Positions 4,121 through 45,513 of a DNA stretch of 64,000 nucleotides are shown one piece after another. Position 1 is the first letter of the stretch; the number at the start of each line of letters is the position of its first letter. Location: IMG/VR virus record IMGVR_UViG_3300008110_010000, positions 1-64,000 of that record; one strand, 5' to 3'. The translations under genes were made by a program, and so were the position numbers. The notes below the pieces were generated by a model, which saw only the letters and a list, made by a program, of their open reading frames with translations, did no database searches and had not been told where the DNA came from.

Positions 4121-4573
4121 TTAATTAGAAACACTAAAGTTATTTGATGTGAAAATTCTTTGCGCATGTGTATTCCAATCCTCACATTCACATTTTATTG
4201 ACGAATAGGACCCTAACATCTGAGAGCATGTCTCGTTGACAAACCAGATCGGAGCTAATTTTGGTCTTTTGATCCTGTTAGTAACATACAGGTTATACAG
4301 AAATGCGATTTCATTATCAAGTTTATTAAACCAAACATAGCCCAGCGGAGATTTGTTTGAAAATAAAATAAAAAGTGTATGACCCTCTTTTAGTCTATTA
4401 AAAACGTCTTCTAATTTGAACATCTTATCCCACGAGTATTCCTGTTTAAAATAGTTGATTAGAATCTCCATATGATTTATATGAATGTCTTCAATTTGAT
4501 TTTCGATTCTTACCACACCCAATTTTTTTTGATCTATAAAATCTTCCCTGTTTATATTAAAGTTAATCATCAT
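4121..4573 (-). CDS. GNAT-family acetyltransferase
   Basis: PLGYVWF..AFLYNLYV..R and WNTHAQRIF..NNF match the GNAT motif pattern. Confidence 0.55.
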   Translation of the reverse strand: MMINFNINREDFIDQKKLGVVRIENQIEDIHINHMEILINYFKQEYSWDKMFKLEDVFNRLKEGHTLFILFSNKSPLGYVWFNKLDNEIAFLYNLYVTNRIKRPKLAPIWFVNETCSQMLGSYSSIKCECEDWNTHAQRIFTSNNFSVSN

Positions 4574-5640
4574 ATTAGTTTTCTTTCTTTGTTTATAAAT
4601 TCTTGCATATTATGCCAAACATCGTCTTTTAAACCAATTTTATTTAATTCATTAATAAAATCTTGATGATCCGGATGATCCTTGTCCCAAATTTTATGTA
4701 GTTGAAATTCAGTATCACTAAATGTTCCCCAATTTGTAATTTTTCCAAAAAATACATTTAATTTATTTCCAAAGATGGAGTGCATCAAATCATAGAATTT
4801 CTTCATTTCTTTATAGTTTGATGTTTGCACTACAAACGAGGTTTTTACAGATTTTAATGTTGGTATAGTAGATATGAATTTTAAATTATCAATTAATTCT
4901 TCCCAATTACCTCCCACCCTTACCTTGTTTTCGTAAGTATCTTTAGTAGCCGCATCTATGCTGATTTCACACGTTTTTACATATTTGTGAACTTTTTTCA
5001 TAGAGTTCCACATTTTTTCATTCCATTTTGTTGCATTTGTATGTAAATGGATTCGTTCTAAATTTGACCATTTTGACTTATCAAAGTTTCTTAAAAAATC
5101 TCTAAATCCAACAGAAACAAATGGATCACCACTACCAGTTATATACAGCGTTTTTGTTGTTTTACCGTATTCATTTTCAATATCCTCAATCGTTTTTTTA
5201 ATCCTTTGTATTCCATCGGCACTTTCCACAATTAAATCAACCCTACAAGATGGACATTTAAGATTGCACGTTCTATCAAATGAAAATTGAATTATTGTTG
5301 GGGGTTCAGTGATCCCGTTATTAAATAAATCAATTCTTTCTTTTAATTTACTCGGCATCTCATTCTTATGATAAAGAGTATCAGTATTACCAATTTTTCC
5401 AAATGTTACTAATTGATGTAAAAACGGACACTGACCTTTATCACAATATTTATAAGAGCCATCTAAAACGGATTTTCTGATTTCTATAGCCTCTTCGGAT
5501 TCCCAGGAATTTTTTAATGTGGTGTTTTCTGGTAGATACTTTTTCAACCACGATGCACAACAAAGAAACCTATTTTTATGTTGTATTTCAAGTGACACAA
5601 ATGGAACAGCACACACATAATTTTTTAAATCGATACTCAT
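4570..5640 (-). CDS. Radical SAM protein with N-terminal SPASM/twitch-like Cys cluster
   Basis: CNLKCPSC (CxxxCxxC), GSGDPF, N-terminal CAVPF...LCCASW. Confidence 0.85.
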   Translation of the reverse strand: MSIDLKNYVCAVPFVSLEIQHKNRFLCCASWLKKYLPENTTLKNSWESEEAIEIRKSVLDGSYKYCDKGQCPFLHQLVTFGKIGNTDTLYHKNEMPSKLKERIDLFNNGITEPPTIIQFSFDRTCNLKCPSCRVDLIVESADGIQRIKKTIEDIENEYGKTTKTLYITGSGDPFVSVGFRDFLRNFDKSKWSNLERIHLHTNATKWNEKMWNSMKKVHKYVKTCEISIDAATKDTYENKVRVGGNWEELIDNLKFISTIPTLKSVKTSFVVQTSNYKEMKKFYDLMHSIFGNKLNVFFGKITNWGTFSDTEFQLHKIWDKDHPDHQDFINELNKIGLKDDVWHNMQEFINKERKLI

Positions 5641-11939: not shown

Positions 11940-12565
11940 GAATTTATATGATTTTTGAAGACGATCCTTCTATTTGTTTCCCTAATAGAATTAAAATCAT
12001 AATTAATATTCGTTGTGTATACTATTCTATCAGATTCTGAACCTAATGTAAGGGTTGGCATATGTTGTAAATCACCAGGAAAAAATAGAATATCGCTTTC
12101 TTTTGGAGTGAATGAATGTAATTTTTCGTCTTCTGTTTTAAAAATAAGATCCCCTTCTCCATCTTTAAGATCCGAAGGAATTTGTATATAAAAAACATAG
12201 GTCCATTGCGTTTTCAAATTTGTTCTATTCGATGATTCTATCCAGTCATGGGTGTGCATCCATTCCATTTTAAAACCCGGAACTTGTATGTATATCCAAC
12301 TGGATTTTATAAATCTGTCTATTTTGCAAGACAATTTTTTCCTTAAAAAATCCAATGCCTGATTATCTACAGATCTAAATTCATCGCATCCAATATGGAC
12401 GTCCAATGAATTTTGTACCCTGTATGTCTCGTTTTGGTATAAGGATTCGTTTTGATATATTCTAGTTAAAAATTCTTTTTTCGAAAACTGATTATCGTAC
12501 CTTGTCTTGTAGATTGTGTATTTTTCTGACAGCTTATATTGTTCTGAAAAGTTTATTTTTTTCAT
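11936..12565 (-). CDS. Putative 2OG-Fe(II) oxygenase
   Basis: MHTHD, WTYVFYIQIP, GDLIF, LQHMP...RI; start set at MKKINF. Confidence 0.75.
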   Translation of the reverse strand: MKKINFSEQYKLSEKYTIYKTRYDNQFSKKEFLTRIYQNESLYQNETYRVQNSLDVHIGCDEFRSVDNQALDFLRKKLSCKIDRFIKSSWIYIQVPGFKMEWMHTHDWIESSNRTNLKTQWTYVFYIQIPSDLKDGEGDLIFKTEDEKLHSFTPKESDILFFPGDLQHMPTLTLGSESDRIVYTTNINYDFNSIRETNRRIVFKNHINS

Positions 12566-12968
12566 ATTTCCCATATTTAGTAAACAGTTCATTTCCACGA
12601 TATATTTTTTTCGTGGCAATCGATAAATTTCTATCAATATTCGGTTCACTATCCCAAGAACAGCTGTTTACCCAGTGCATGGGTGTTTTAAATATCCAAT
12701 GACAATTTTTTTCTAGATTGACATTAAACGTCCATTCGTCACCAATCTTAGAAAATTCGTACATATCATAAACATGGATCTTAACGTTATAATCAAGGGA
12801 ATTTAATTCTGATTCAGTTAATTGGTAAATCCCTGAATCCCCCTTCCAGTTAACGAATATTTCTTCCCCCTCATCGATATCTCTAAGAGCAAAAATACCT
12901 ACTCCGTGTATATTGCTCGGCGACATTTTAACGTTCACATGATTTTTGATGTATTCATATGCAGTCAT
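12534..12968 (-). CDS. SET-domain protein (lysine methyltransferase-like)
   Basis: SNIHGVGIFALRDIDEGEEI...WVNSC...PN...GNELFTKYG. Confidence 0.8.
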   Translation of the reverse strand: MTAYEYIKNHVNVKMSPSNIHGVGIFALRDIDEGEEIFVNWKGDSGIYQLTESELNSLDYNVKIHVYDMYEFSKIGDEWTFNVNLEKNCHWIFKTPMHWVNSCSWDSEPNIDRNLSIATKKIYRGNELFTKYGKYEKNKLFRTI

Positions 12969-13441
12969 TATATGAAATTTTTTGGTGTGGTTCTGAATTG
13001 AGATCCATAGTTTCCTAATATCTCTTCACCTTCTTTTATCTTTCTAATTGCAACAGGTGCCACATTATTATTGCTATCCACGTTACAGTTTTTCAATCCA
13101 CTGTTCATAAACATTTTTGGCCAAATGTATATCCAGTGATAACCTCGCTCTAAGGGGAAAAATATTTTTCCATATTCCTTAGGTATGATTTGTTCGACCC
13201 CATTTTTATCAACAAACCACATTTTATTGTCAAAGGTTTCGTATAAATTTTTTTGGAGCTTATCAGGGAGTGTGAATAATTCTTCCTGTGTAATTGAATA
13301 TATCCCACTCTCCCCATGCCAAAGATCAAAAACAGATTCACCTGCTTCAATATCTCTAATGGCAAAAAATCCAACGCCCTCTACAGAACTCGGCTTAAGT
13401 ATTGCTGTGACCTTTTGCTGAAGATATTCTAAAGGAGTCAT
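12968..13441 (-). CDS. SET-domain protein
   Basis: SSVEGVGFFAIRDIEAGE...FMNS...IKEGEEILGNYG. Confidence 0.8.
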   Translation of the reverse strand: MTPLEYLQQKVTAILKPSSVEGVGFFAIRDIEAGESVFDLWHGESGIYSITQEELFTLPDKLQKNLYETFDNKMWFVDKNGVEQIIPKEYGKIFFPLERGYHWIYIWPKMFMNSGLKNCNVDSNNNVAPVAIRKIKEGEEILGNYGSQFRTTPKNFI

Positions 13442-13456
13442 AAATATCCACAGAAT

Positions 13457-13600
13457 TTAAGAATGTTTTAACTTAATCAGTTCTACAAGTTTTGACAATA
13501 TAGTGAAGGTTTTCTGTTTTTTATCCTCGCTGATCGATGAAGCTTGTCTTAATTTAAGATCAACAGTATTAATTGACTTATATTTTGTTGGTTTTATCAT
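13457..13600 (-). CDS. Small hypothetical protein (47 aa, not in the ORF track)
   Basis: MIKPTKYKSINTVDLKLRQASSISEDKKQKTFTILSKLVELIKLKHS fills the gap directly after the Hint gene. Confidence 0.55.
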   Translation of the reverse strand: MIKPTKYKSINTVDLKLRQASSISEDKKQKTFTILSKLVELIKLKHS

Positions 13601-13605
13601 GATCT

Positions 13606-15480
13606 TTATATTTTTGGTATTCCTCTGTTATGTGCTAAAATTCCATTAGCAAAAAAGTTATGATTATTTTTAATATCCTGTAAATTATAAACTAGAGTGG
13701 TTTCTTCTATCATGTTTATGTTCACAATTTTTGAGCTCCCCTTTAATAACTTTAAACAGTCTCCAATCTCTATCTTACCGATTTTAGATTCTATAGTATA
13801 CAGTTTATTAGATAGATTATTATCGAATGAAGACCATCCTTTATCTTCAACATATACTGGGTGATCTATGGTACATTTTAAAAATTCACCATTCTCTAAT
13901 TCATACTCAACAATTCGGTCCACTTTTTTACTATAAACAGCATTTACTGTATTGGCCTCAATATTATTTGATAGCATGTTAAGTGTCAGTACAGAATCAC
14001 CAGCAATAATATCCTCTATATTTTTTGTAACACCTTCCGAGATGGTTATTTTCGTGCCTGCAACGAAACATGGTGCATTGTGTGTTACGAATGAATTGAC
14101 AGGAGTTGATCCTGCTATTATGTAGGTGTCAGTATCCTCAACATCAATTTCAACTAAGCTGAAATTGTTTTCATTAATTATTAATATTTCAGAATTTGTG
14201 ACCTGCGCTAATGATCCATCATAATCTACTAAGTAATCTGTCGTTGTTTTTATGTTTACAGATTGTTTCCATACGATCGAGTCCATTCCCTCGTCATAAA
14301 CTAAGAAAGATTTATGAACCGACGTATAAATTGAATCCTCGTTATTATTTACTGTTATATTAGATAATGTTTTATTCAACAATTCTTTACTATTTTTATA
14401 TATAACAGTAGATGTCGTTAGATTAGATTCCGGTGGTAAGGTGTTTCCTGATATTTGCCAAGTTGGATATGTGAAGTCGTCTTCCGTTAAATCTGTTCCC
14501 CCTATATAATAAGATTTTATTTCTTCCCCGACAGAAATGTTCCCTATTTCTACCTCAGTATCATCAGATTTAATTATTAAATGCGTGTTTAAAATGCCAT
14601 CAATTATACCATCATATTTAATAAAATTTGTTGCAAACTCGTAATAATGTTTATTGTCTATCTTATTAATGTATTGGGCTTCATTATAAATTGATTCGAC
14701 AGGTAATTCAAATGCCGCACTTTCCTGAAATTGTCCTACGTGAATTAGGGACAGATCACCTCCGTAAATAATCGAGAAAGTTCTCACTGTGGAAACTTTA
14801 TTATCTGAAACGGTTTGTGAACTTATGTGATATTTTTGTATTACGTTATTTTCTGTTGCCTTTTCGCTGATGAATACTCCCCATCGGCTTTGGTCTGTAT
14901 CTTCAGTGGATTCGCTGCCTATTTTATAAAAATCTATAAGGGAATGTTCCGCATCGCTTATGTTTTTTATTAAGCAATCTGGCAAATTTCCCGAATTAAA
15001 ATCCCTAGAAATCGTATCGTATTGTCCGAGTGAGGATGAATGATAAAACTCCGCAACGCTATCCTGCTCATTATAATCACAGAATAGCCTAAGTGTGTTT
15101 AATGTTCCCTTAGCATACTCGCTATCAAAAATGGCTGATTCGTCATACGCCATTCTCAGAACGAATAAGTCTGAAGCATCCTCAACAGGAGTCGGGTATA
15201 TTCTGTTTGATTGCTCTTTTATCTCCTTAAATTCTGTGATAAATGGAGCGTTCGATGTCAATGATTCGGAAAGTTTATCGACTATATACTGATGTATGTT
15301 CGGCTTATGTACTACCGTTACTCTTGTGATGTTATTGCTCTCTAAAACCGAGATAAGGTCGTTAAAATCCAGATAGACTAAATTATTAGTCGAAATAGTT
15401 GTGTCTGTATTTACTTCCAATAGTCTTAAATTGCCAACGCTATCCTCAATAAAATCCGCGGAAAAAAAGGTTCCTTTCAT
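13606..15480 (-). CDS. Protein with an ATP-grasp-like N-terminus and two tandem Hint domains
   Basis: SADF...LLEVNT at N-terminus; first Hint-like unit ends SFVTHN; second begins CFVAGTKI and ends NFFANGILAHN. Confidence 0.7.
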   Translation of the reverse strand: MKGTFFSADFIEDSVGNLRLLEVNTDTTISTNNLVYLDFNDLISVLESNNITRVTVVHKPNIHQYIVDKLSESLTSNAPFITEFKEIKEQSNRIYPTPVEDASDLFVLRMAYDESAIFDSEYAKGTLNTLRLFCDYNEQDSVAEFYHSSSLGQYDTISRDFNSGNLPDCLIKNISDAEHSLIDFYKIGSESTEDTDQSRWGVFISEKATENNVIQKYHISSQTVSDNKVSTVRTFSIIYGGDLSLIHVGQFQESAAFELPVESIYNEAQYINKIDNKHYYEFATNFIKYDGIIDGILNTHLIIKSDDTEVEIGNISVGEEIKSYYIGGTDLTEDDFTYPTWQISGNTLPPESNLTTSTVIYKNSKELLNKTLSNITVNNNEDSIYTSVHKSFLVYDEGMDSIVWKQSVNIKTTTDYLVDYDGSLAQVTNSEILIINENNFSLVEIDVEDTDTYIIAGSTPVNSFVTHNAPCFVAGTKITISEGVTKNIEDIIAGDSVLTLNMLSNNIEANTVNAVYSKKVDRIVEYELENGEFLKCTIDHPVYVEDKGWSSFDNNLSNKLYTIESKIGKIEIGDCLKLLKGSSKIVNINMIEETTLVYNLQDIKNNHNFFANGILAHNRGIPKI

Positions 15481-18696: not shown

Positions 18697-19482
18697 TTAT
18701 AGTGATAATAATATATTTTCAGCAATTATATACTGTCCAGTTTCGTTTGGGTGATGATCGTTAACTAATTCTTCCCAAAATTTTGTATCATAATTTTTAT
18801 ATCTGTCAGAATATCTTAAGCATTCATTTGATGTAAACCTCTGAGCGTCGATATTAAATTCATCATCATCTAGCGGAAAGTAAATAATTCTGCTTGGATG
18901 AGTAATTGTTTTAATGACATTTTCTTTCCTTTTTTGCGTGGAATTTACATCTTTAGGATGTATAGGGTTTAAAAACCAATATTTAACTGTCGCACCTATT
19001 TTATTTTCCAAATAATCAAAAACAGGAAGTACGTTTTTAAATCCAAGAATTAATAATTCAATTCTAAAATCTAAAACGAAATCTACGTATTTTTTCATTT
19101 TTTCTTCATCATAAAATTTTTCACTCCTGAAATAATCAATCTGATGCCAATCAAAATCTATCAATACGTCATTTATTTCAAATATGTCTTTACTAGACCA
19201 CGATTCTCTTACGTGGTTTTCGTTAACAAAAGGTACAGGGAACCTATCTGGGTATGTAAACTCGAAAACCACTAAATCCCCCTTCTTTATTTTTTCCATC
19301 TGCCTGAACAGCTTTACCGTAGATTCAAAATTGGATTGACCACTAAACCCGTTATTTACAAAATTGAATCCAATTTTTTCGGCTAATATTTCTGGCCAAA
19401 ATTTCAAGCCGTATTCTTTTTCGTGATGTGGAGAATGAGTCCAACTACATCCGTAAGCCCATAGTGTGTTTTTTGTAATCAT
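18697..19482 (-). CDS. SGNH hydrolase-like protein
   Basis: LWAYGCSWT, NNGFSGQSN, DHHPNETGQ. Confidence 0.65.
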   Translation of the reverse strand: MITKNTLWAYGCSWTHSPHHEKEYGLKFWPEILAEKIGFNFVNNGFSGQSNFESTVKLFRQMEKIKKGDLVVFEFTYPDRFPVPFVNENHVRESWSSKDIFEINDVLIDFDWHQIDYFRSEKFYDEEKMKKYVDFVLDFRIELLILGFKNVLPVFDYLENKIGATVKYWFLNPIHPKDVNSTQKRKENVIKTITHPSRIIYFPLDDDEFNIDAQRFTSNECLRYSDRYKNYDTKFWEELVNDHHPNETGQYIIAENILLSL

Positions 19483-21376
19483 CTAGAATTTCTATAGATT
19501 TGAACCATAACATTTTACCAAATTTTCCATCGTGTAATGGAGACATATTTAGAAATATCAGGCCTGTTATAAATTTAATCTTATCGAGATCGAATCCGTT
19601 TTTCCTGATCCATCCCTCATATTCAGATCTAAACTTAATTAGATTCTTTGAGATATGATATTCATATTTAATAGAATAAGATCCTTCAAAGTATGTGATA
19701 TTACTGTCATCTTTCATTAAATTGTATGGGATTATTAATCCGCCATAAAACTTAGAAAGATCGTAATAAATGTCTCCAGATTCTACATTTTCTCCAAAGC
19801 AGTCTCTCCAGTCTATGTAATAGTATTCGCCATCTTCCGATAATATCATATTATCAAAGTGGAGATCACCATGAAAATTAGAATAGAAAGGATTCTCGTA
19901 AAGACAGTCAAATATTTTTTCATCAGATAATATAAGATCCAAAGATGGTCTTTTAATTTCGTTTATTTCATGATCAGAAACAAAATAACTTTCTCCATAT
20001 TTAGCAAGAAATGATTCTAGTCTTTTATGGGTTTTGTCGACATAAAACTTTTTAAGATCTTCTATGTTTGCAGGGATTGTCTCCTTGGTGAGGAATTCCA
20101 GCTTTGTCAAAAACCTACTAAAATCCCCCAGTTCCCCGCGATCGTATAAAGTTTTACCTTCTATCCAATCGTAATAAAGAAAATTCCCAGCAACATTGAA
20201 ATTTGGGGGAACCAAGCCTCTTAAAATTTCTCCTCTAATTTTCCTTCTTTCTAGCAGATCTCTATCTTGTGTAAACTTTAAAAATTTACCCCCGTCCTTA
20301 TAGGTTATTTCTCCTATGTCTTTTTTCAAAGATAGCGGTTTATCATTAAAGTACTGTCTAGCTTTATCTAGATCGTCTAGATTTCCGGTATCTAGCCATT
20401 TTAACTTTTTTGCCTTTAGACTTGTATAGACTTGAGGTGATTCAAATGCAGAAACTAATTCACCGCTTTTAATATTTTCTTTAAGCTCTTTCCAGAAAGT
20501 GGAGTAATCTGATATTCCTCCGAAACCAACAAATGCTAGATCGTATCCGTCAGTACTTTTGTTAACGAAAGATGTTATATTTTCTTTATCGTCCATCTTC
20601 ACCGTGGAGTATTTTTCTGGATATGATGTTGAATGAACCCCTAACCAGTTACCGTTTATTCCAGGGATCGGAGAATCTATGATACAATCTCCCATTATAA
20701 AATAAAAAGGTCTTTGAAGATGCTCGGAGCACAACAGAGCGCTTGTACCTGGCCCAGTTTGCGAAGGATCATAATTCTCGACATTTACGAATGTAAATTT
20801 GTGATCTGGATAAACTAGATTACAATACTCTTTGACGGAATCTCCCTTGTATCCAATAGCTATGATAAAGTCATATTCCTTAGGGAATTTTTCTATTATG
20901 TAGGATATGATAGCCCGATTGTTTACCGGCAATAAAGTTTTATTTATGTTGTCTGTTAATTTTTTTAGACGGCTACCTAAGCCTGCACATAATATTAAAA
21001 CCGCGGGAGTTTTATGCTCGCTTTCGATCTTTCCATCAGGTCTATTTGTATCATCCTCCACTCGTATTACATCGTCGACCTCCGGGGTAGAAACTTCTTG
21101 CATTATCAGGTCGGTCAAAGCAATTACCCTGTGTTTTTTAGGAGGAATTACGTTATAGTATTGACCTGGGCCGTACACCTCCTTAACAATTTCACCTTGA
21201 TCATTCTCCAGCCAAATTTCTGCTTGTCCCGATATGATATAGTTAGTTTCTTTTTTAAAGTTGTGATACTGTAAAGATGTTTTATATCCCTCGTTTATAT
21301 AGATTCTTTTATAACAATAAGAATCATTAAGTTCTATCCATTCTTCTTTACCCCACGGTTTATAAATTGTTTTCAT
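19445..21376 (-). CDS. Cupin + nucleotidyltransferase + choline/aminoglycoside-kinase-like fusion
   Basis: KPWG..SLQYH..K.ET (cupin); LCAGLGSRL (NTP transferase); FHGDLHFDN..IDWR (kinase). Confidence 0.8.
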   Translation of the reverse strand: MKTIYKPWGKEEWIELNDSYCYKRIYINEGYKTSLQYHNFKKETNYIISGQAEIWLENDQGEIVKEVYGPGQYYNVIPPKKHRVIALTDLIMQEVSTPEVDDVIRVEDDTNRPDGKIESEHKTPAVLILCAGLGSRLKKLTDNINKTLLPVNNRAIISYIIEKFPKEYDFIIAIGYKGDSVKEYCNLVYPDHKFTFVNVENYDPSQTGPGTSALLCSEHLQRPFYFIMGDCIIDSPIPGINGNWLGVHSTSYPEKYSTVKMDDKENITSFVNKSTDGYDLAFVGFGGISDYSTFWKELKENIKSGELVSAFESPQVYTSLKAKKLKWLDTGNLDDLDKARQYFNDKPLSLKKDIGEITYKDGGKFLKFTQDRDLLERRKIRGEILRGLVPPNFNVAGNFLYYDWIEGKTLYDRGELGDFSRFLTKLEFLTKETIPANIEDLKKFYVDKTHKRLESFLAKYGESYFVSDHEINEIKRPSLDLILSDEKIFDCLYENPFYSNFHGDLHFDNMILSEDGEYYYIDWRDCFGENVESGDIYYDLSKFYGGLIIPYNLMKDDSNITYFEGSYSIKYEYHISKNLIKFRSEYEGWIRKNGFDLDKIKFITGLIFLNMSPLHDGKFGKMLWFKSIEILDDYKKHTMGLRM

Positions 21377-22747: not shown

Positions 22748-24525
22748 ATTAATATTTTATCTATGACCTCTGTTTCACCTCCGGGGAACACCGCTATATC
22801 TTCGAACAGAACCTCATTGTCCCCAAGTCCCCCTAATTTTAATTGTTTTTTGAGAGTTATAAAATTCCTAAATTTGCATATCTGAAAATTAAGAGGGGTA
22901 GTTTGATTCTTTACTCCAATCTCTTTTAAATAGTGATAAAAAACTAACTCAGGTATCAGGTGGTTTCTGCTTTCTTCAAACGTTCTAATGTCTATACTTG
23001 GTAGGTGCCTATAAAAATCGCAAATTTTATCGAACGTTAAAGAATCTGAAAACCAAAACACATCACCAATTGCAAAATGAGGGTAAACATCAATTTTTCT
23101 ATTATGTATAGAAAATATAGTATTTGGTTTAACAGTTGATAAAATTTCGATTAAATCAAAAACCTGTCCCCATGGAACATATTGATCGTACCGTAATCTG
23201 ATACAAACATCATATTCGAAATTATTTTCTATCTCGTATTGTCTTTTCAATTCGCACGATCTCATCACTGCATAAAACTGGTTTGCACACCAAGTAATGG
23301 GCGGACCTTCATTTTCTGGATATCTCTCCTCTGCAATGTCAATAACATCCTGGTTTACTCTTTGATTTTTTTCAAAATCCTCAATTAGATATTTTTTCGG
23401 TTTGTATATTTTAATTATTTCATTTAATTTATCATCGTCGTACGGAGTTACTCTATTATTGGCGGTTACATCCAATATTGGTCTGGATTCGCTTTCAAAA
23501 TTCCAAGCATGGCAGAAAAAGTCGACAGTGCTATTAGGATCACTTTCAACTTTATTTTTTAGCTTTATTATGTTGTGGTAGCATTTTTCATAAGTTCTGA
23601 ATTGACCACTTAAGCAGATAGCAATTTTCATAGTTCTTAATTTTTTTAACACATTGGGTGAAAACCCGGTCTTTTCAAAAATTTCTTTTTTGAATTTCAA
23701 AAGTAGATTGTATCCGATGTGTTTGACGTTTGATAATTTTTGAAACTCGTGATTATATAATATTCTATTGATTTCAACACACTCCCTAAAATTATCCACT
23801 GGATGATAACCCAGGGAGAATTCTCTAAAGATTGTCCACTTATACTCCATTTCATTTAGAAACTCTATAGATTCTATATTATTTTCCTTGAGATAATCAT
23901 CAAAAAACACGTGATAAAGATCTTTGCTTTTATCTGTTGTGATAATATAGTTATGAAACAATGAAGCCTTATCCATAACTGAGGAATTTGACATAAATAC
24001 CACATCATGCAGCATTCTGCTTGAAGGATTCTCAAATTCTGTTATTGTGTCGACTAAAAAAATACCATTTTTGATAAAAGAAATGTTGTCGTGAATTATA
24101 TTTTTTAATTTAATCGACGGATCATATATGCAATCCATTCTCATTTTTATTACAACGTCGTATTGAAAATTGTTTTCCTCTTCGTATTTCTTTTTTAAAT
24201 TAACACTTTCATACCAGCTGTACCACATCGGGGAATTTGATGTCCCCTTTTTTAGAGACAAATCGTAATAGTCCTCGTAAATATCAACCTTAGTTTTTTT
24301 TGGTTTGTATATGTTATTAATTTTTATGTAATCATTTAGTTCTACCTTCTTGATATGGGTATATTCATGTTCGGGTCTTTCGTCCCCAAAAAATCTTTTA
24401 CCGTCATTAATATCCCACGTGTGTATAAAATAGTCGGCCTCACATCCCTCAATAAAATTGAGTATGTTGATGGAAGAATCAACTGCCCTTCTTATTTGAC
24501 CACTAAAGCAAATCGCAATTTTCAT
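22744..24525 (-). CDS. Two-domain tandem putative glycosyltransferase-like protein
   Basis: MKIAICFSGQIR and MKIAICLSGQFR each start a copy; each copy has YDVxIxxRxD and DVxF. Confidence 0.55.
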   Translation of the reverse strand: MKIAICFSGQIRRAVDSSINILNFIEGCEADYFIHTWDINDGKRFFGDERPEHEYTHIKKVELNDYIKINNIYKPKKTKVDIYEDYYDLSLKKGTSNSPMWYSWYESVNLKKKYEEENNFQYDVVIKMRMDCIYDPSIKLKNIIHDNISFIKNGIFLVDTITEFENPSSRMLHDVVFMSNSSVMDKASLFHNYIITTDKSKDLYHVFFDDYLKENNIESIEFLNEMEYKWTIFREFSLGYHPVDNFRECVEINRILYNHEFQKLSNVKHIGYNLLLKFKKEIFEKTGFSPNVLKKLRTMKIAICLSGQFRTYEKCYHNIIKLKNKVESDPNSTVDFFCHAWNFESESRPILDVTANNRVTPYDDDKLNEIIKIYKPKKYLIEDFEKNQRVNQDVIDIAEERYPENEGPPITWCANQFYAVMRSCELKRQYEIENNFEYDVCIRLRYDQYVPWGQVFDLIEILSTVKPNTIFSIHNRKIDVYPHFAIGDVFWFSDSLTFDKICDFYRHLPSIDIRTFEESRNHLIPELVFYHYLKEIGVKNQTTPLNFQICKFRNFITLKKQLKLGGLGDNEVLFEDIAVFPGGETEVIDKILI

Positions 24526-25672
24526 ACTCTAATAAATAATCTCCAATGTCTAGATTTCTTATAGAATCCATCATTTTTAAAAAATTGGAAGATTTTTTTT
24601 CTAAATTCCCATCTTTTTTATTTTCTATCTCGTACATAAATCTATTTCTGTCGCCATCTCCCAATTTGTAGATTTGCTCCATTGCAAGATCCTTCAGCTT
24701 TGGGTGTAAACAAGATATGTGTAAGTAATTGGGGCTATAGACAAAATTATATTCAATTTGTTCACCGGAAAAAAACTCTCTAAAATTCCACACATTACAA
24801 ACATTCAAAACACTTATTGTCTGGGTTATAGTAATTTGTAATTTTTCTTTTTTCAGTTTTAAAAAATTATCATACACAACTTCCCATTTTGAAGGATATC
24901 TTATATAATCATTCCTATTTCCAACGTCGTCTATAGAAAGCTGTAGTTTTACCTCCCGAAATTCTCTTAACAGCTCTAAAAACCTGTCTGGTAAATTTGT
25001 ACAGTTTATGTTATATACCAGCTTTATATTTTTTGATTTGTCTAGAGAAATCAACTTCTCCAAAAAGTAAAAATGCTCCTTTATCAACGTTGGTTCTCCC
25101 CCGTTGATGTAAATTTCCTCCAATTCGCTAGAATGCTTTAATAATTCATCATACCATTCTTTGTTTTTAAACCAATCGCTTTTATAATCTTCATAGTTGT
25201 AATGATCGTCTCCGAACGTGGACGGAAATCTTTTAACATCTTCTATCCACTTGCTACTTGACATCGGGTTGCATGTTAAACACTTTATGTTACAAACATT
25301 ACCGAGTCTTAATTCGATAAACTTAAGATGTATATTTGGGAGTTTTTCGCTTATACTTATTTTATTGAGATATTTAGCATTTTCTTCATCTCTTTTACTC
25401 TTGAATCCGTTTTCTTCTATCCTGTAACAACCTATACATTCGATAGGTTTCTCATTATTCATCATCTTTCTTCTAATTTCTGTGAAAGAATCAGAATTCA
25501 TAATGTCTTCTATGCTATCCTTACCTAGGGTTAATACTCTATTTTTAGTTTTGGAGAAACAAACCCCATTTTCAAAATTAGCAATACAACAAGGTGACAC
25601 CAGCCCGTTAGGATGAGTTGCTAAATGCGTAAACGGTAACGAACATATAGTTTTTAAATTTGTGTCCACCAT
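24503..25672 (-). CDS. Radical SAM protein with twitch/SPASM-like N-terminus
   Basis: CSLPF..CC; CNIKCLTC; GGEPTL. Confidence 0.85.
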   Translation of the reverse strand: MVDTNLKTICSLPFTHLATHPNGLVSPCCIANFENGVCFSKTKNRVLTLGKDSIEDIMNSDSFTEIRRKMMNNEKPIECIGCYRIEENGFKSKRDEENAKYLNKISISEKLPNIHLKFIELRLGNVCNIKCLTCNPMSSSKWIEDVKRFPSTFGDDHYNYEDYKSDWFKNKEWYDELLKHSSELEEIYINGGEPTLIKEHFYFLEKLISLDKSKNIKLVYNINCTNLPDRFLELLREFREVKLQLSIDDVGNRNDYIRYPSKWEVVYDNFLKLKKEKLQITITQTISVLNVCNVWNFREFFSGEQIEYNFVYSPNYLHISCLHPKLKDLAMEQIYKLGDGDRNRFMYEIENKKDGNLEKKSSNFLKMMDSIRNLDIGDYLLEYENCDLL

Positions 25673-26991
25673 TCTAATAATTTTTTGTTTTGTCCTAGAA
25701 TATTCTCAAATGTTAATGATCCATTTAAACCGTCCTTTCTGAACTCTGCTATTCTTATCATGTTTTCTTTCCCTCTCTTTCTGCCCTCTTTATAATCTGG
25801 ATACGATTCTTCGAAAGTTTTTTTGGTTTTTAAATCTTCTAAAGCCTCCACATAAATTTGGGTTTTCGATGTAACCCTTGGCTTAATGTAATCTAGGGTA
25901 TCGTCTATAATTTCTTCGAGGATGGACCTAGGTATTGACAATGGAGACATAAGAACAGAGGAATCGAAAGAAAAAGTTGTTTTTATATAGGTTACTACAT
26001 TTAATTCCACTGCACGATCGAATAATTCTTTTATAGACAGTAGGCCTGGAAGAGTTATTGTAAGATCAAAAACCATTCCATGATCGCCGTATAAATCGTT
26101 TAGAAAAAGACCTCCCTTAAAATTATCTAGCCACTTTTCCCACACTATTCCAGTTCTGATAAATTCAACAATTTTTCCAGTTCCATCTATACTTGCACAC
26201 AGATTTACCCTTTTAAAATGAGGCAGAAAATCATATAGATTCATTCCTTTATATGATACCCTGCTTAAATTTGTGTTGTATCTTATTATAACATTCTTGG
26301 ATTGATTATTATCAACCAAATACTTCATGATATCCCAATGAATGTCCCACATCAATGGTTCACCACCTACCCAATATATTTCTTCTATTCTATTCTCTTT
26401 CACTGCTTCCCAAAGTTCGTTTTCAGTAACTTCTTTCTGGAATTTTTTAAATTTTTCTTGATTTTCTTTTTTATAAAATGGCTCGGTTTCTAAATTAATG
26501 TTGCCCATTATTTTTCTTTCCGCCTCCCACTGTGAACTTAACAAGTCGCCACACATTCTACATTTAAAATTACACAGATTACTTATCCGATAGTCATATG
26601 ATATTGGTTTCATGTGAGTGTAACCATCATCTTCCGTTTTTTCGAATATCTCGTCTATTTTGTGGGGAAAAAGTGTATTGGTGAAATAACCTTTGTATGT
26701 GTAAAGATTTAGAATTTGATCGTTACAAACCTGACATTGTGGAATTGACTCTCCGGACATTATTCTTTTTCTAATGTTTTTCATATAATCACTATTCCAA
26801 TGATCCTCCAGCGAAACTGGTTTAAAATGTGAGTTATCGTCAGGATTTTCAGAATCTATGTACTGTTTAATATAGTTTGCCTTTTCCCTACTTGCACAAC
26901 ATAATCTTCTTTCCCCCTGTGGGGAAAGATATGTGTGTGTCCACGGTGCTGTACAAAAAAATTCATTTCCATCCGAAGGTTTTATTCTCAT
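25654..26991 (-). CDS. Radical SAM protein with twitch/SPASM-like N-terminus
   Basis: CTAPW..LCC; CNFKCRMC; GGEPL. Confidence 0.85.
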   Translation of the reverse strand: MRIKPSDGNEFFCTAPWTHTYLSPQGERRLCCASREKANYIKQYIDSENPDDNSHFKPVSLEDHWNSDYMKNIRKRIMSGESIPQCQVCNDQILNLYTYKGYFTNTLFPHKIDEIFEKTEDDGYTHMKPISYDYRISNLCNFKCRMCGDLLSSQWEAERKIMGNINLETEPFYKKENQEKFKKFQKEVTENELWEAVKENRIEEIYWVGGEPLMWDIHWDIMKYLVDNNQSKNVIIRYNTNLSRVSYKGMNLYDFLPHFKRVNLCASIDGTGKIVEFIRTGIVWEKWLDNFKGGLFLNDLYGDHGMVFDLTITLPGLLSIKELFDRAVELNVVTYIKTTFSFDSSVLMSPLSIPRSILEEIIDDTLDYIKPRVTSKTQIYVEALEDLKTKKTFEESYPDYKEGRKRGKENMIRIAEFRKDGLNGSLTFENILGQNKKLLEWWTQI

Positions 26992-27908
26992 ATTAATCTG
27001 CTAGATTTTATTATATTCTGCGTATAGAGATCACCCCTTCCGTTTGAAATCCATTCATACAACAATTCTGCCCATAATTTGTGCGATTTGGGTGTTGGAT
27101 GTACACCATATAATCTTTCCTCCAACGGTATCTGTTTTATATAATTTAAAAATGAATTTGATGGCTTGTCTTTCATCAGAAAATTGGATTCTGGTACATG
27201 GTCCCATTTTAATTTACTCATACGGTATAGATCCTCCCCCCAAATACCTTCAACATATTTGAAAGAATCTATCCATTTCATAATATTTAAGTCTATAAAT
27301 TTTCTTTCCATTTTATAGATATGATGTTCCTCAGGTAAAGCATTGAACAAATAACATGGAATTCCGTACTTATCGCAAAACGTACGTATTTCAAAATTGT
27401 AGTTTATGAAATCGTACGCTCCTTCATAGTCATTTTGAACAACCGATAAATACCACTTAAAGAATTCCCTCATTCCATATTCCTCTTTATTGAAATCTCC
27501 GTTACTGTTTAGAGTTTTTCGGTATATTTTATTATGAGTATTGAAAAAAAATTCCTTTCTAACTATAGAGGTCCATCCAATGACTACAATGATGTCATCT
27601 GGAGTTTTATTAGGGACAATGTAGTTTTCAAGTAGCCAGTTTAAAAGTGTTTCAAAAATCCATTTGTTACCTACTGCAGGCTTGGCTAAATTTATAACCT
27701 CTTTTGCCCCTATTAATTCTTTTAAATATGTTGGCCAAATTCTTTCAATCCTATATTGATCGTTTTTTGCGTCAGTATCTTCTTCTATTATCCCGTTAAA
27801 TTTATTTATTTGGTGAGGCTTTGATGGAGCTTCCAAAAACTGTGGGTCCACAATTTCACTACCATATGTAAAGCTATCTCCGCACACAACTAATTTCATT
27901 TCACTCAT
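26988..27908 (-). CDS. SGNH hydrolase-like protein
   Basis: VCGDSFTYG, NLAKPAVGN, GVHPTPKSH. Confidence 0.7.
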   Translation of the reverse strand: MSEMKLVVCGDSFTYGSEIVDPQFLEAPSKPHQINKFNGIIEEDTDAKNDQYRIERIWPTYLKELIGAKEVINLAKPAVGNKWIFETLLNWLLENYIVPNKTPDDIIVVIGWTSIVRKEFFFNTHNKIYRKTLNSNGDFNKEEYGMREFFKWYLSVVQNDYEGAYDFINYNFEIRTFCDKYGIPCYLFNALPEEHHIYKMERKFIDLNIMKWIDSFKYVEGIWGEDLYRMSKLKWDHVPESNFLMKDKPSNSFLNYIKQIPLEERLYGVHPTPKSHKLWAELLYEWISNGRGDLYTQNIIKSSRLI

Positions 27909-29460
27909 CTTTAATATATTTTAGCATTTCATCCTGGATATCGGGTTCGATGTAATCCTGAGATCCTGGATTGCTATTTTGAGGATCTAATACCCATCCC
28001 TCTTTTTTTGCGGTTTCTATCACATCGTCGACATATTTATTAGATTTAGCATCGTCACCATCAACCATTCCTATTTCAAGGGGCTCTATTTTTGTTTCAG
28101 GTATCGAATCGAACCATTCTGATAACATCGGGAATGATTCTTTAAAATTCCTATTTCTTCTTATGTCATATTGAATATAAAAAGATTTAAAATCTCTTTC
28201 TCTAGATTCAATAGATGATGTAAATCTATGCCCAGTTTCAACTTCTCTTATGTAAGCAATCATTCTGATTATTCCATCTCTCTCAATATCTAGTAAATCA
28301 GAAATATTCTTACTTAGCCATCCCTCTATATGATTTGCTCGTTCAATTCTTATGTCTTGCGGTAGTGTAACTATAGACTGAAAGCTTGGAAACCTTAATA
28401 TATTAAAAGAACAAATCGGGAAATGCTTGCCAAATTTTTTCTTCATTTTAATTACCTCATCCATAAATTCAGTAAGACTAAACAGACACAAAGAATTTAT
28501 AGTCATCATTACGTTTAGGGATGCCAATTTACCTTCTTCACAAACCCTGTACATATTTTTAAGCCATTTTTCCCAGATTAATCCATATCTGATATACTCA
28601 GCTTGCTTCCCTGTTGCTTCGCATGATGTGTAGAGATGAAACGTTTTAAAGCTGTGTGTCGACTTAATAAGTTCTTCCAAGAGTTCGTCTTTCTGTCCTA
28701 GATTGGAGTTAACTGCAAATTCCACACTACAATCCTTATTGGTTTCCCACCATTTCATCAGTTTCCAGAAATCTTGAGACATTGTTGGTTCACCTCCTGT
28801 TACTCTCAATTCTCTTAAAGAATATTGAAGCTCTCCCTCCCACCATTTCCAAAATGCTTCGATGTATGGATTTCCGATATTTTTTTTACCGTATGGGAGA
28901 GAGTGCGAACCATCATGCTGGAAAGCAGCTGCACCATCACTTACTAAATTCTGATATGGGCCGAACTTTTTTATATCATTTTGCCAGGTTGTAGAAAATG
29001 AAGAATTGCAGTAAGAGCATGCAAAGTTACAATTGGGATCGAATGCAATTTCTAATGTTTTTAGATCCACGTCTTGCTGCCATCCGAGTTTGTTCTTGGC
29101 ATCTTTTAGTTCTTCATCGGTGTAAATAACAGATTTATAAACCCGATCAGAAACTTTGTCGCTTCCCATGTCCTCTATTTTCCAGCAATACTCGCATTCT
29201 TTAGGTCTTTCTCCCTCCAGCATTTGTTTTCTGACCAATTTTTTATAGCTAGTGTTGTGTATTGCTTTATAACTTTGCGCAACTTCTGCGAGGGGTATTT
29301 TATGAGCTGGGGGGTGATGGCAACTAGCTGTAGTTCCGTTTCCTAACCAGATTGTTGCGTTATACCATTTAGCACCACAGAAGGAAGGGGAAACAGAGTT
29401 TATCGCTCTGTCCCTATATTCTTGGTAGCTCTCCTCTCCTTTTTTTGCAAATATTCCCAT
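27901..29460 (-). CDS. Radical SAM protein with twitch-like N-terminus
   Basis: FCGAKW..SCHH; CNFACSYC; TGGEP. Confidence 0.85.
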   Translation of the reverse strand: MGIFAKKGEESYQEYRDRAINSVSPSFCGAKWYNATIWLGNGTTASCHHPPAHKIPLAEVAQSYKAIHNTSYKKLVRKQMLEGERPKECEYCWKIEDMGSDKVSDRVYKSVIYTDEELKDAKNKLGWQQDVDLKTLEIAFDPNCNFACSYCNSSFSTTWQNDIKKFGPYQNLVSDGAAAFQHDGSHSLPYGKKNIGNPYIEAFWKWWEGELQYSLRELRVTGGEPTMSQDFWKLMKWWETNKDCSVEFAVNSNLGQKDELLEELIKSTHSFKTFHLYTSCEATGKQAEYIRYGLIWEKWLKNMYRVCEEGKLASLNVMMTINSLCLFSLTEFMDEVIKMKKKFGKHFPICSFNILRFPSFQSIVTLPQDIRIERANHIEGWLSKNISDLLDIERDGIIRMIAYIREVETGHRFTSSIESRERDFKSFYIQYDIRRNRNFKESFPMLSEWFDSIPETKIEPLEIGMVDGDDAKSNKYVDDVIETAKKEGWVLDPQNSNPGSQDYIEPDIQDEMLKYIKDE

Positions 29461-29461
29461 G

Positions 29462-30115
29462 TTAAATTATTTTGGCGCTAGGCGCTATTTTATTGAATTC
29501 GTTGATCGAATGGCTAGAGTATTCTGGATCTTCAAATATAATTCCATGATTTCCGTTCCCACTTTTATCGAATGTTTTAAATTTTGAATTTCTTTCAAAA
29601 TCAAAAAACGAGTACAGCTTTTTTGATTTCTCGTCAAAGGAATCGACGATTTCATCGAAAACTGCAATTTTATAAATATCCCCTTTGAACCAGCATTCAT
29701 AAGATCCACTGTATGGATTTATAGATCCTATAAAAATATTCTTGTCTGAATAAGATTCAATTGGACCGGTTTCTTTTTCACCTTTTAAAATTCCATCGAT
29801 GTATATTTTAACAGAATCTGAAACTGTCACCATGACTTCCATTCTTTTATGTATATCATCAACAGGTATCCAGATATCGTTATATTGATAGGGTTTAGTG
29901 TACCAAGAGAATTTAACACCATTTGGTTTCTGTAAAAATATTCCCATATGGTATCCTATCCTTCCTACAATCAACGACTCATCCTCTGCAAACTCAGAGA
30001 GTTGAAAATCCCCATAAAGAGAAAAATTCCCCTCCAGATTTTCAAAATTCTTTGTGTTCGTATTATTTTTAGAATTGTTTGGGATGTAATATGCTTTCTT
30101 TTCGAATCTCATCAA
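29462..30115 (-). CDS. LamG/concanavalin A-like domain protein
   Basis: IYIDG, IFIGS, FKGDIYKIAVFD, DKSGNGNHG. Confidence 0.7.
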   Translation of the reverse strand: MMRFEKKAYYIPNNSKNNTNTKNFENLEGNFSLYGDFQLSEFAEDESLIVGRIGYHMGIFLQKPNGVKFSWYTKPYQYNDIWIPVDDIHKRMEVMVTVSDSVKIYIDGILKGEKETGPIESYSDKNIFIGSINPYSGSYECWFKGDIYKIAVFDEIVDSFDEKSKKLYSFFDFERNSKFKTFDKSGNGNHGIIFEDPEYSSHSINEFNKIAPSAKII

Positions 30116-31494
30116 ATTATTTTTTTATAAAATTCCTCAAATTCTGGAAAAACCTTCAAAAAATTGGTGCCTCTTCTTTTATCGTGATTGTCTACAAAAA
30201 TTCGGAAATCCCTCCTGTTCTGTAATAAGGTCTCTTCAGGTTCTTCCGTTACCATCCAATCATGAATTCTATTTAACTTATTGATTTCGATGTCGGTATA
30301 TCCAAATCCATCAAGACCAACTCTTATTTGTTCGTAGAAGTCCATTAGCTGAGCTTGCTCTTTTACTACTGCAGACCATTCCTTATCTAATATTTTCACT
30401 GTCTGGTGTGGAGGCCACCTTAAATAGGACGAGTCTAACATAATAGAGGAGCCATAGTATCTGTGAGGGTTGTGATATTCTTCCTTAAGCTTTACCACAT
30501 TTTCTATTAACTTTTCATAATTAGGAACGGAAAGTGCGTTATATGTGGACATTATTATTACGGTCAGAGGCTCAATTTCTTTCAATAGAAAATTAACTCT
30601 ATCCCACCATTGGTTGAAGACCAAACCATGTCTAATGTATTCAGCTTGTTCTCCCCAGGTATCTGCACTGGTAAATAGTATCACCTCGTTTACCCTGTTC
30701 TCGTCTATCATTCTTTTTAATTTTTCTACCATTAGATTAAAAAGCTTATCTGGTGCTCCTAAATTCGTATTGAGAGAAAAATTTAAATTTCTGTTTGGGT
30801 TTTTTTCATCCAAGATATAATCAAAAACCTTAAAAGTGTCTTTAGACAGAAGAGGTTCCCCTCCCGTTATTCTAAAAGTATGAAGATCTCTGTATAAATC
30901 AGGCCACCATTTCCAGAAAGCCTCAACGTATGGGTTCTCCTGATTATGCGGTCTTGGGATCATGTTCAGATCCTTCAAATATTCTAAATTGTTAAATCTA
31001 AAGCTGGTAGGATATGGTCCATGCTGCTCTATTTCTTGAACCCATTGGGAAGAGAACGACGGTCCACAATACGAGCATTTAAAATTACAGTGATTACTAA
31101 AAGCTACCTCAACATACTTAGGATTGTAATTTTCTTTCCACCCTAAATCTTTTATTTCATTAAAATATGGGGCAGACCAGGGTTCAGAAGATTTATAAAT
31201 TCTATCGGAAAATGCATTTGATGTATCTTCTATATTCCAGCAATAATCGCATTCATCTGGTCTTTTACCATGAAGCATTTTTCTTCTCTGCTGCTTTTTA
31301 TAAACTGTATTATGTAGAGCAGATGGGTTTTTTTCTAACTCTGATAGTGGGATATGATGCGTGCCTGGATGGTGACACGAATGTGTTTGTCCCATTTGTA
31401 AATGAAGTGTTACTTGAGTCCATTTTGCTAAACAAAAGCCACATCCAACATCGTTTAATTTATTTCTAGTTTTGTCGAAAAATTCGTTTAGCAT
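30112..31494 (-). CDS. Radical SAM protein with twitch-like N-terminus
   Basis: FCLAKW..SCHH; CNFKCSYC; TGGEPL; close paralogue of 27901-29460. Confidence 0.85.
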   Translation of the reverse strand: MLNEFFDKTRNKLNDVGCGFCLAKWTQVTLHLQMGQTHSCHHPGTHHIPLSELEKNPSALHNTVYKKQQRRKMLHGKRPDECDYCWNIEDTSNAFSDRIYKSSEPWSAPYFNEIKDLGWKENYNPKYVEVAFSNHCNFKCSYCGPSFSSQWVQEIEQHGPYPTSFRFNNLEYLKDLNMIPRPHNQENPYVEAFWKWWPDLYRDLHTFRITGGEPLLSKDTFKVFDYILDEKNPNRNLNFSLNTNLGAPDKLFNLMVEKLKRMIDENRVNEVILFTSADTWGEQAEYIRHGLVFNQWWDRVNFLLKEIEPLTVIIMSTYNALSVPNYEKLIENVVKLKEEYHNPHRYYGSSIMLDSSYLRWPPHQTVKILDKEWSAVVKEQAQLMDFYEQIRVGLDGFGYTDIEINKLNRIHDWMVTEEPEETLLQNRRDFRIFVDNHDKRRGTNFLKVFPEFEEFYKKII

Positions 31495-44865: not shown

Positions 44866-45513
44866 ATGGCAAATGGAGTATACAAAATTACAGAAGAATT
44901 TGAAAAATCACTCGAAAGCTATACAGGAGCTCCACATGTTGTAACTTTAGACAATCAGAGTAACGGACTTTTTCTTTCCCTATATTATGAAAATTACGTT
45001 AAAAAGAGCATAGAAAAAGGAAGTATAAAAATTCCAAGTCGAACTTATCCTTCAGTTCCTTGCGAGATTATTCATGCTGGCCTTAAAGTAGAGTTTGAGC
45101 ATGTGAAAGGTAAGACGATTAAAGGTGCATACCAACTAAAAGGGAGCAAGGTTTGGGATTCTGCATTGTGTTTTACCTATAATATGTATAAGAAAAATAC
45201 CCATATGTGCGTTTCTTTTACTGGACCATTTAAGCATTTTAAGTTGTCTAAAGGTGGAGCAATATTAACAGATGATCATGAAGCATATCTTTGGTTTAAA
45301 AGAGCTAGATATAGTGGCAGAAGAGAATGTTCTTATCATGACGATCACTTTGATATGCTGGGATGGAATTTTTATATGATGCCAGAATTAGCAGCAAGGG
45401 GTTTACTCATGATGGGACAATTTTATGATCCTACAACGGGAAAACCTAAAAACAATCCAGATCTGGAACTACCATATCCAGATTTATCAAAATTTGATAT
45501 TTATAAAAAATGA
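44866..45513 (+). CDS. DegT/DnrJ/EryC1/StrS-like aminotransferase (short)
   Basis: TYPSVP, WDSA, SFTGPFKH..GGAIL, GWNFYM; only 215 aa. Confidence 0.8.
   Translation: MANGVYKITEEFEKSLESYTGAPHVVTLDNQSNGLFLSLYYENYVKKSIEKGSIKIPSRTYPSVPCEIIHAGLKVEFEHVKGKTIKGAYQLKGSKVWDSALCFTYNMYKKNTHMCVSFTGPFKHFKLSKGGAILTDDHEAYLWFKRARYSGRRECSYHDDHFDMLGWNFYMMPELAARGLLMMGQFYDPTTGKPKNNPDLELPYPDLSKFDIYKK

Follow-up and report, generated by a model that had tools for sequence, protein, structure and literature searches.

The DNA analysed here (the window, 64 000 nucleotides) is the first 64 kb of the 219-kb IMG/VR virus record IMGVR_UViG_3300008110_010000, the completeness of which is estimated at 79%. A gene on its minus strand (13606..15480, from the list of open reading frames (ORFs) and the translation) encodes a protein of 624 amino acids plus stop, in which an ATP-grasp core is followed by a degenerate Hint unit (Hint1), an intact Hint unit of the bacterial intein-like (BIL) type (Hint2) and a tail of 6 amino acids. 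With a little more confidence than doubt, the gene product is considered to be a self-processing phage amidoligase whose BIL unit removes itself from the C-terminal tail of the ligase. This reading was built on the folds, the conservation of residues, the architecture of the family, the swapping of units between its members and a conserved small protein predicted to bind; how the protein would cleave, that it acts as a ligase and what its substrate is were extrapolated from them.

Results

Hint2 (residues 471-618; 13627..14070, on the minus strand like all parts of the gene) was delimited with Pfam, NCBIfam, the PDB and a tree of the units. Three Pfam models matched it above their gathering scores (Intein_splicing, 42.0 bits; PT-HINT, 31.4 bits; Vint, 29.4 bits) and the NCBIfam models for the N- and C-terminal parts of inteins matched as well. 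When a family profile was compared with the PDB, the best match was BIL2 of Tetrahymena BUBL (6y75/6tmm, 1.9e-15) and the second was the BIL of C. thermocellum (2lwy, 4e-12). Hint2 has no endonuclease insert, and its predicted local distance difference test (pLDDT) values were 73-94 in a fold of the whole protein. Residues C471, T537, D539, H540, H617 and N618 showed no variation in homologues with identities as low as 54%. Hint2 thus shows the testable features of a type-A BIL, namely Cys1, the block-B Thr-x-x-His and a terminal HN followed by a non-nucleophilic +1 residue. Because the catalytic set (C471, T537/H540, H617-N618) is intact and invariant, autoprocessing would be the natural expectation for this unit. 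Judged by sequence, splicing as a canonical intein is excluded for both Hint units, since their +1 residues (A469 and R619) provide no nucleophile. Hint2 is followed by the C-terminal tail RGIPKI, whose Arg is the +1 residue (13609..13626, from the translation).

The best Pfam E-value on Hint2 was obtained with the eukaryotic AXH domain (1.4e-13, above cut-off) over residues 472-576 (approximately 13753-14067). Ataxin-1 AXH chains were also matched in the PDB (approximately 4e-7). AXH was rejected as the identity of the domain; the match is confined to residues 472-576 and was taken as a Hint-related cross-match. At the level of sequence, the AXH matches are a link between BIL-type Hints and AXH. 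WDR5 and other weak Pfam matches were dismissed as noise.

An exhaustive search with residues 1-470 returned 246 clusters at 50% identity, and 103 representatives of these were aligned (alignment A3). A smaller alignment (A1) contained close homologues that were 54-86% identical overall. Residues 1-470 were modelled with AlphaFold2 (AF2) on A3, which gave a pLDDT of 94.2 and a predicted template modelling score (pTM) of 0.89. This model supersedes the fold of the whole protein made with a 10-sequence alignment, which was poor over residues 1-470 (pLDDT 55). Structural Z scores were taken from VIA superpositions against solved chains.

Hint1 (residues 292-468; 14077..14607) was delimited by profile-profile and structure comparison. 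In this protein it went undetected by every family library scanned, and residues 286-468 gave no signal when compared with a Hint unit using a 10-sequence profile. With the 103-sequence profile, hhalign matched residues 295-468 to the canonical unit from end to end (98.2%, E 4e-14). The AF2 model of Hint1 was superimposed on the BIL 2lwy with a Z of 19.5 and a root-mean-square deviation (rmsd) of 1.5 Å over 138/138 residues of 2lwy. Z scores were 18.9 with 6tmm and 16.9 with hedgehog (1at0), and many inteins also matched. Foldseek gave a match with an E-value of 7e-9, and the A3 family profile matched BIL chains by sequence (E 6e-6). According to these models and profiles, Hint1 is a true Hint fold. 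Domain parsing by structure prediction, which the original prediction had put forward as a check, thus yielded a Hint fold for residues 292-468, and the two tandem Hint domains that it described were recovered, the second with Pfam and NCBIfam and the first with hhalign, the AF2 model and the match of the family profile.

The active site of Hint1 is largely lost. The position of Cys1 is occupied by Gly295 (Gly in 90 of the 103 representatives, Cys in none), which bears out the earlier remark that the first unit lacks an obvious N-terminal Cys or Ser. Lys390 stands at the position of the block-B His, a column that varies freely across the family, and hhalign placed Asp451 at that of the block-F His. 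The terminal His467-Asn468 is kept: HN was found in 100 of the 103 sequences and N468 was invariant. Of the type-A BIL features, Hint1 therefore lacks the N-terminal nucleophile and the block-B His and retains the C-terminal His-Asn. Because Cys1 and the block-B His are both gone, Hint1 would be unable to cut at its own N-terminus and could at most cyclise Asn468. Two residues, Ala469-Pro470, link this HN to Cys1 of Hint2 (14071..14076, from the translation). The motifs quoted previously were all found in the translation: SFVTHN (HN at 467-468) followed by AP and by CFVAGT from C471, GILAHN (HN at 617-618) with RGIPKI and a stop codon after it, and DGILNTH at 293-300.

Residues 1-287 (14620..15480) were assigned to an ATP-grasp core from structure and profile matches. 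This segment was superimposed on the glutathione (GSH)-synthetase-like 5oeu (Z 9.8), on YgiC 7uka (Z 9.6; chain 94-379) and on GspS 2io7 (Z 8.8; chain 310-609), the superpositions spanning 208-219 residues at an rmsd of 4.4-4.8 Å. Foldseek also placed it with ATP-grasp ligases, and an Atlas model resembled GSP_synth or circularly permuted (CP_ATPgrasp) proteins (TM 0.54-0.59). These structure scores are middling, yet they were consistent over at least 10 family members. When the family profile was aligned with YgiC by hhalign, an E-value of 7.7e-4 was obtained over the same ranges as the structural match. The motif LLEVNTDT was lined up with LLENNADT of YgiC (shared LLExN.DT), K172 with the lysine of the YgiC VVK motif, and VIQKYH with the hinge. 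D9, E22 and D119 were invariant among the 103 aligned sequences, of which at least 90% had N24, R109, K172 and R233. In ATP-grasp enzymes, the residues of the Mg triad are spaced as D-x12-E-x-N and a Lys binds ATP. From this general knowledge, D9/E22/N24 were presumed to be the Mg triad and K172 the ATP-binding Lys. Pfam gave no match for residues 1-287 of this protein, and Pfam GSP_synth matched just 4 of the 103 members (best E 0.006), which does not place the family in GSP_synth at the sequence level. The N-terminal pre-ATP-grasp domain of YgiC (approximately 93 amino acids) is absent, the alignment beginning at YgiC residue 94. Since every family member begins at residue 1 of the core and the core has no pre-ATP-grasp domain, the N-terminal Mg motif was judged genuine and not the result of a truncation. 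The ATP-grasp-like N-terminal part announced by the original prediction was supported by the structural matches and the profile alignment to E. coli YgiC. The data support the view that residues 1-287 form the catalytic core of a permuted ATP-grasp carboxylate-amine ligase of the GspS/YgiC/eukaryotic-GSH-synthetase type.

A 47-amino-acid ORF (13457..13600, minus strand), characterized by synteny, alignment and co-folding, starts 5 nt past the stop codon of the gene and so follows it directly, as had been noted. An ORF of 29-50 amino acids located 0-17 nt downstream of the gene was found in 9 of the 9 homologue contexts examined, including those of relatives with only 24-33% identity in the N-terminal part. 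Five of these small ORFs were aligned with the 47-amino-acid ORF and were 24-74% identical to it. The Pfam family PF24214 gave a non-significant match (E 0.056). Co-folding of residues 1-470 with the 47-amino-acid protein gave an interface score (ipSAE) of 0.87 (runs 0.84, 0.88 and 0.87), the best control reaching 0.09. Of 80 solved complexes, 58 had reached this ipSAE mark, as had 2 of 110 mismatched pairs, a calibration that holds only roughly here, with co-folding performed on custom alignments and a partner alignment of 6 rows. The runs shared at least 88% of contacts and the partner pLDDT was at least 84. In the co-fold model, the N-terminal strand of the partner (its residues 5-10) pairs with the Hint1 strand 429-437, and residues 8-23 and 132-141 of the ATP-grasp core are covered by the C-terminal helix of the partner (its residues 31-46). 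The predicted contacts on Hint1 are residues 297-301, 370-385, 408-412 and 429-440. These models support binding of the 47-amino-acid protein to the ATP-grasp core and Hint1, and the ORF would be a partner of the ligase-Hint1 body and not an incidental neighbour. The idea that it represents the missing pre-ATP-grasp piece of YgiC was unsupported (hhalign E 0.53) and was dropped.

More than 1000 homologue clusters were found at 90% identity. All members were metagenomic, and a search of 50 697 deposited phage records yielded none. In the GTDB species genomes, the sole match was one 2.8-kb contig in a Cyanobium metagenome-assembled genome (MAG), the profile search reaching only close relatives. 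The homologues are named in databases just as 'hypothetical protein' or 'intein/homing endonuclease'. Throughout the family, the N-terminal part (ligase core and Hint1) is constant and the segment past the HN of Hint1 varies. This segment is made up of 1-10 residues (HN-K-stop, or HN-PAPPPKL in P0137, the closest unit-less relative), of a Cys-rich segment of 20-60 amino acids (13 of the 103 representatives) or of one to three intact Hint units, so that a protein contains 0, 1, 2 or 3 intact units. The Cys-rich segments contain 4-12 Cys, usually end with Lys and stand directly behind the invariant HN of Hint1. They form the tail in P0253, P0255, P0262, P0270, P0271, P0276, P0277, P0280 and P0285, and lie between Hint1 and a BIL unit in P0225, P0272 and P0275. 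They look like knotted peptides or ribosomally synthesized and post-translationally modified peptides (RiPPs) behind a self-cleavage motif.

Junctions were counted in 222 family proteins. The linkers are mostly of 1-2 residues. The linker between Hint1 and the first unit has 2 amino acids in 165 of the 222 (AP 132, SP 21) and 0 in 17. Between units, RF (80), K (24), RY (9) and others were found, with 2 amino acids at 103 of 171 junctions. The +1 residue after a canonical HN is K in 207 and R in 156 of 373 cases (363/373, 97%), Thr in 2 and never Cys or Ser. The proteins end in K (111), KL (29) or R...PK[L/I], and the RGIPKI tail fits this conserved PK[L/I] end. A tree of the units splits R-type first units from K-type later units. 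Hint2 of the present protein is of the R-type, and the K-type unit that usually follows is missing.

Units within one protein are approximately 37% identical (median). Across proteins, units were found that are 83%, 89% and 76% identical while the corresponding N-terminal parts are 39%, 47% and 37% identical. Unit 3 of P0026 with unit 1 of P0154, and unit 2 of P0160 with unit 2 of P0165, are such near-identical pairs (83-89%, with ligase parts at 39-47%). On the tree of the N-terminal part, the number of units shifts at least 20 times. The low identity within proteins, the high identity across proteins and these changes in number thus indicate that the units are old paralogues that were gained, lost and exchanged through recombination. 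Being optional and exchanged, the units are more readily seen as accessory or mobile cassettes than as something that the enzyme cannot do without. As far as these comparisons indicate, they are BIL cassettes exchanged between phage lineages without a homing endonuclease. The repeated unit boundaries (CFVAGT...LVHNK) could be candidate recombination points.

The gene lies in a minus-strand block, the tailoring island, that extends from approximately 3.5 to 37.4 kb. Two SET-domain genes stand directly downstream of the gene pair (12534..13441, minus strand; 12534-12968 and 12968-13441, Pfam SET matches). Two small SET genes adjoin the gene pair in the homologue contigs L004, L005 and L006 too, the homologue being one and the same protein (P0078) in L005 and L006. 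The presence of this lysine-methyltransferase-like pair beside a protein family with a conserved C-terminal Lys was found intriguing. The island also contains several 2-oxoglutarate (2OG)-Fe(II) oxygenases, GDSL-like genes, an APS-kinase-like P-loop protein, DUF2061, methyltransferases and at least five radical S-adenosylmethionine (radical-SAM) genes, two with SPASM domains. From domain matches, the radical-SAM genes are located at 24503-25672, 25654-26991, 4570-5640, 27901-29460 and 30112-31494, all on the minus strand; a sixth candidate was matched on the plus strand at 45510-47693. In two of the proteins, the iron-sulfur SPASM domain is N-terminal (residues 10-90), ahead of the radical-SAM core, whereas these domains usually come in the opposite order. 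Two adjacent minus-strand genes (32802-34244 and 34241-35647) encode GT7 (beta-1,4-galactosyltransferase-like) glycosyltransferases according to domain matches, and one of these proteins carries a laminin-G/ConA-like domain. The GT7 family is uncommon in phages. A 643-amino-acid fusion of a cupin/mannose-6-phosphate-isomerase C-terminal domain, a nucleotidyltransferase and an APH-type kinase (19445-21376, minus strand) suggests that nucleotide sugars may be activated in the island. Outside it, a collagen-like tail-fibre gene (51147-55778, plus strand, 1543 amino acids) has a local GC content of 0.44-0.47 versus approximately 0.31 elsewhere. Long overlapping ORFs on both strands at this gene were considered by-products of repeats.

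The record encodes a gp23-type major capsid protein (G000:C1:131082-132476, locus L002). Its nearest deposited gp23-like relatives were found in an uncultured 462-kb phage (46%), in Lak megaphages (approximately 41%) and in Tenacibaculum, Sphingomonas and Xanthomonas jumbo phages. On the basis of these capsid relatives and the collagen-like tail fibre, the source is taken to be an uncultured jumbo phage. The homologue contigs derive from marine metagenomes. A cyanomyovirus origin, to which a Kyano_Gp96 neighbour in L004 and the 2.8-kb Cyanobium MAG contig had first pointed, was rejected as unproven; it is at odds with the gp23-like capsid, the nearest relatives of which are other jumbo phages or megaphages.

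Discussion

If the protein is a self-processing amidoligase, the mature enzyme body would be the ATP-grasp core fused permanently to Hint1, both clamped by the 47-amino-acid protein. After translation, Cys471 would form a thioester through an N-S acyl shift aided by Thr537/His540. Asn618 would cyclise and Hint2 would be cut off the ligase, cleavage being the main outcome. As a possible side route, the RGIPKI tail could religate onto Pro470 through its newly exposed amine, as in type-A BILs without a +1 nucleophile. Type-A BILs with a terminal HN and no such nucleophile mainly cleave, but the amine set free also allows them to splice (PMC4031507). With the unit removed, HN-AP plus RGIPKI resembles the HN-PAPPPKL tail of the unit-less P0137. 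The ligase would probably modify a peptide, protein or amine substrate within the SET/2OG-oxygenase/radical-SAM tailoring island.

Several points weigh against this reading. The cleavage itself is a prediction from the sequence. The ATP-grasp call relies on Z scores of 9-10, an rmsd of 4.4-4.8 Å and a profile E-value of 7.7e-4; GSP_synth reached only 4 of the 103 members, and the core is missing the pre-ATP-grasp domain. The shallow partner alignment behind the co-folding counts here as well. The C-terminal cassette would seem to be deletable or retainable at little cost, yet the catalytic residues and the basic +1 residue are strictly kept. Such strict conservation points to a possible useful role, for which the idea of a self-removing passenger does not account. 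The invariant Asn of Hint1 in unit-less members that end in HN-K is also unexplained.

A transfer of the hedgehog or BUBL kind is an unlikely alternative. The Cys471 thioester would then be resolved by a specific amine instead of by plain hydrolysis, and the ligase-Hint1 body conjugated at Pro470. Transfer of the N-terminal domain and a scaffold or precursor role towards enzymes encoded nearby, both put forward in the original prediction, are retained as minority hypotheses. The attacking amine could be the epsilon-amine of the conserved tail Lys (K623, or HN-K in other members), a lysine side chain of either the 47-amino-acid protein or some target, or a polyamine bound in the GspS-like domain. 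Such a transfer is in line with Tetrahymena BIL2, the closest solved sequence relative, which conjugates its N-flank to proteins through a Lys-epsilon isopeptide without ATP (PMC8616854). The +1 residue or the tail always holds K or R, the C-terminus is K or PK[L/I], and the N-terminal domain resembles peptide-spermidine ligases. However, approximately one quarter of the complete representatives have zero intact units, so that conjugation is not essential to the function of the family. Moreover, the +1 residue of the present protein is Arg, not Lys, and the 6 amino acids past Hint2 leave no sterol- or substrate-recognition region. An improbable alternative is that neither Hint is catalytic. 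Both folds would be structural or binding modules, for instance a platform for the 47-amino-acid protein, and the protein would work at full length. This would suit Hint1, which is clearly degenerate and predicted to bind the small partner. Degenerate, non-cleaving Hint derivatives do exist, and AXH is the top Pfam match over residues 472-576. It is difficult to reconcile with Hint2, the catalytic residues of which are invariant over proteins that are 54-86% identical and kept in most of 125 units, and it leaves the invariant terminal HN and the variable copy number unexplained.

A distinctly unlikely reading is that the array is a cargo-releasing device, a natural relative of split-intein circular ligation of peptides and proteins (SICLOPPS), in which double cleavage between the HN of Hint1 or of a later unit and Cys1 of the next would free or cyclise the linkers (AP, RF, K) or, in other members, the Cys-rich tails. 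The large protein would be both an enzyme and a precursor with a self-cleaving leader, its peptides being tailored by the ligase and by the radical-SAM, 2OG and SET enzymes encoded nearby. It would account for the invariance of Asn468 in a Hint1 that lost every residue for N-terminal cleavage, for the short and type-conserved linkers (2 amino acids at 165/222 first and 103/171 inter-unit junctions) and for the Cys-rich segments right behind the Hint1 HN in 13 of 103 representatives. An island with at least five radical-SAM genes (two SPASM), several 2OG oxygenases and two SET genes also suits it. Nevertheless, the argument is architectural only; many members would free just one Lys, the identity of the linker differs among clades, and the block-F His, normally an aid to Asn cyclisation, is Asp451 in Hint1. 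No radical-SAM gene was found in the approximately 6 kb examined around a homologue with a Cys-rich tail. Taken further, the Hint array would be a factory of ribosomal small peptides, each HN/linker/Cys1 junction being cut on both sides, which is improbable. The tiny products, released or else cyclised when the freed amine attacks the thioester, could be Ala-Pro or cyclo(Ala-Pro), Arg-Phe, Lys or Cys-rich peptides with a knotted fold, and the fused ligase, the 47-amino-acid subunit and the neighbouring radical-SAM/2OG/SET enzymes would build or tailor them. By far the least credible reading is that of a canonical mobile intein that interrupts a host gene and undergoes standard class-1 protein splicing. 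The 'intein/homing endonuclease' label given by JGI to some homologues, the matches of the NCBIfam intein N- and C-terminal models and the movement of units between hosts would agree with it. The sequence contradicts it: a +1 Cys, Ser or Thr is absent (R619; K/R in 97% of units), there is no endonuclease domain, the insertion is in the last few residues and not in a conserved catalytic site, and up to three units stand back to back. It was rejected on the +1 residue, the distance of 6 amino acids from the C-terminus and the existence of unit-less homologues.

Hint/BIL domains are well known, and so are ATP-grasp ligases. In the literature searches made and in the deposited phage genomes, no instance was found of their combination as seen here, namely a GspS-like ligase core joined to a degenerate Hint with an invariant terminal Asn, to 0-3 abutting intact BIL cassettes with a basic +1 residue and to a universal partner of 29-50 amino acids. 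The family is abundant in marine viral metagenomes. It offers a natural system of adjacent Hint active sites 0-2 residues apart, a case of exchangeable BIL modules in phages without a homing endonuclease, and compact candidates for self-cleaving tags or ligation modules. If cargo is released, a new route to ribosomal small peptides would be at hand; if the array is a small-peptide factory, SICLOPPS would have an equivalent in nature, in which a self-cleaving enzyme plays the part of the leader.

Among known systems, the pretoxin-HINT proteins share with this one a PT-HINT match above cut-off (31.4 vs 27.7 bits). They differ in the toxin domain, which is replaced by 6 residues here and by 1 residue in most members, and this identity was rejected since no domain lies downstream. 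As in the Hog part of hedgehog (1at0, Z 16.9), a C-terminal Hint is carried by a functional N-terminal domain and would be expected to form a thioester where the two meet; unlike in Hog, there is no sterol-recognition region, a terminal His-Asn is present and a degenerate Hint precedes, so that the protein is not of the Hog type. With E. coli YgiC/YjfC and the GspS synthetase, it shares the ATP-grasp core and a Mg-binding strand motif, located here at the N-terminal end of the core. It differs from them by a low identity (approximately 12-17% of aligned residues), by the lack of the pre-domain of approximately 93 amino acids and by the addition of Hint domains and a 47-amino-acid subunit. The best sequence match of Hint2, Tetrahymena BUBL BIL2 (6y75/6tmm), also comes from a polyprotein with tandem BIL units, and lysine-linked chemistry was reported for it (PMC8616854). 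However, BUBL is eukaryotic and alternates BILs with ubiquitin-like cargo, whereas in this phage protein the units abut and the sole N-flank is the ligase-Hint1 body.

Like type-A BIL domains (Amitai 2003; Dassa 2004; 2lwy), Hint2 is small, has no endonuclease, shows the N-terminal Cys, TxxH, His-Asn and a non-nucleophilic +1 residue, and sits in a variable, non-essential part of the protein. The hosts of type-A BILs are bacterial secreted or surface proteins, whereas the host here is a phage ligase of cytoplasmic type. The units of this family form arrays of one to three at the extreme C-terminus, with linkers mostly of 1-2 amino acids, behind a degenerate Hint, and nearly all have Lys or Arg at +1.

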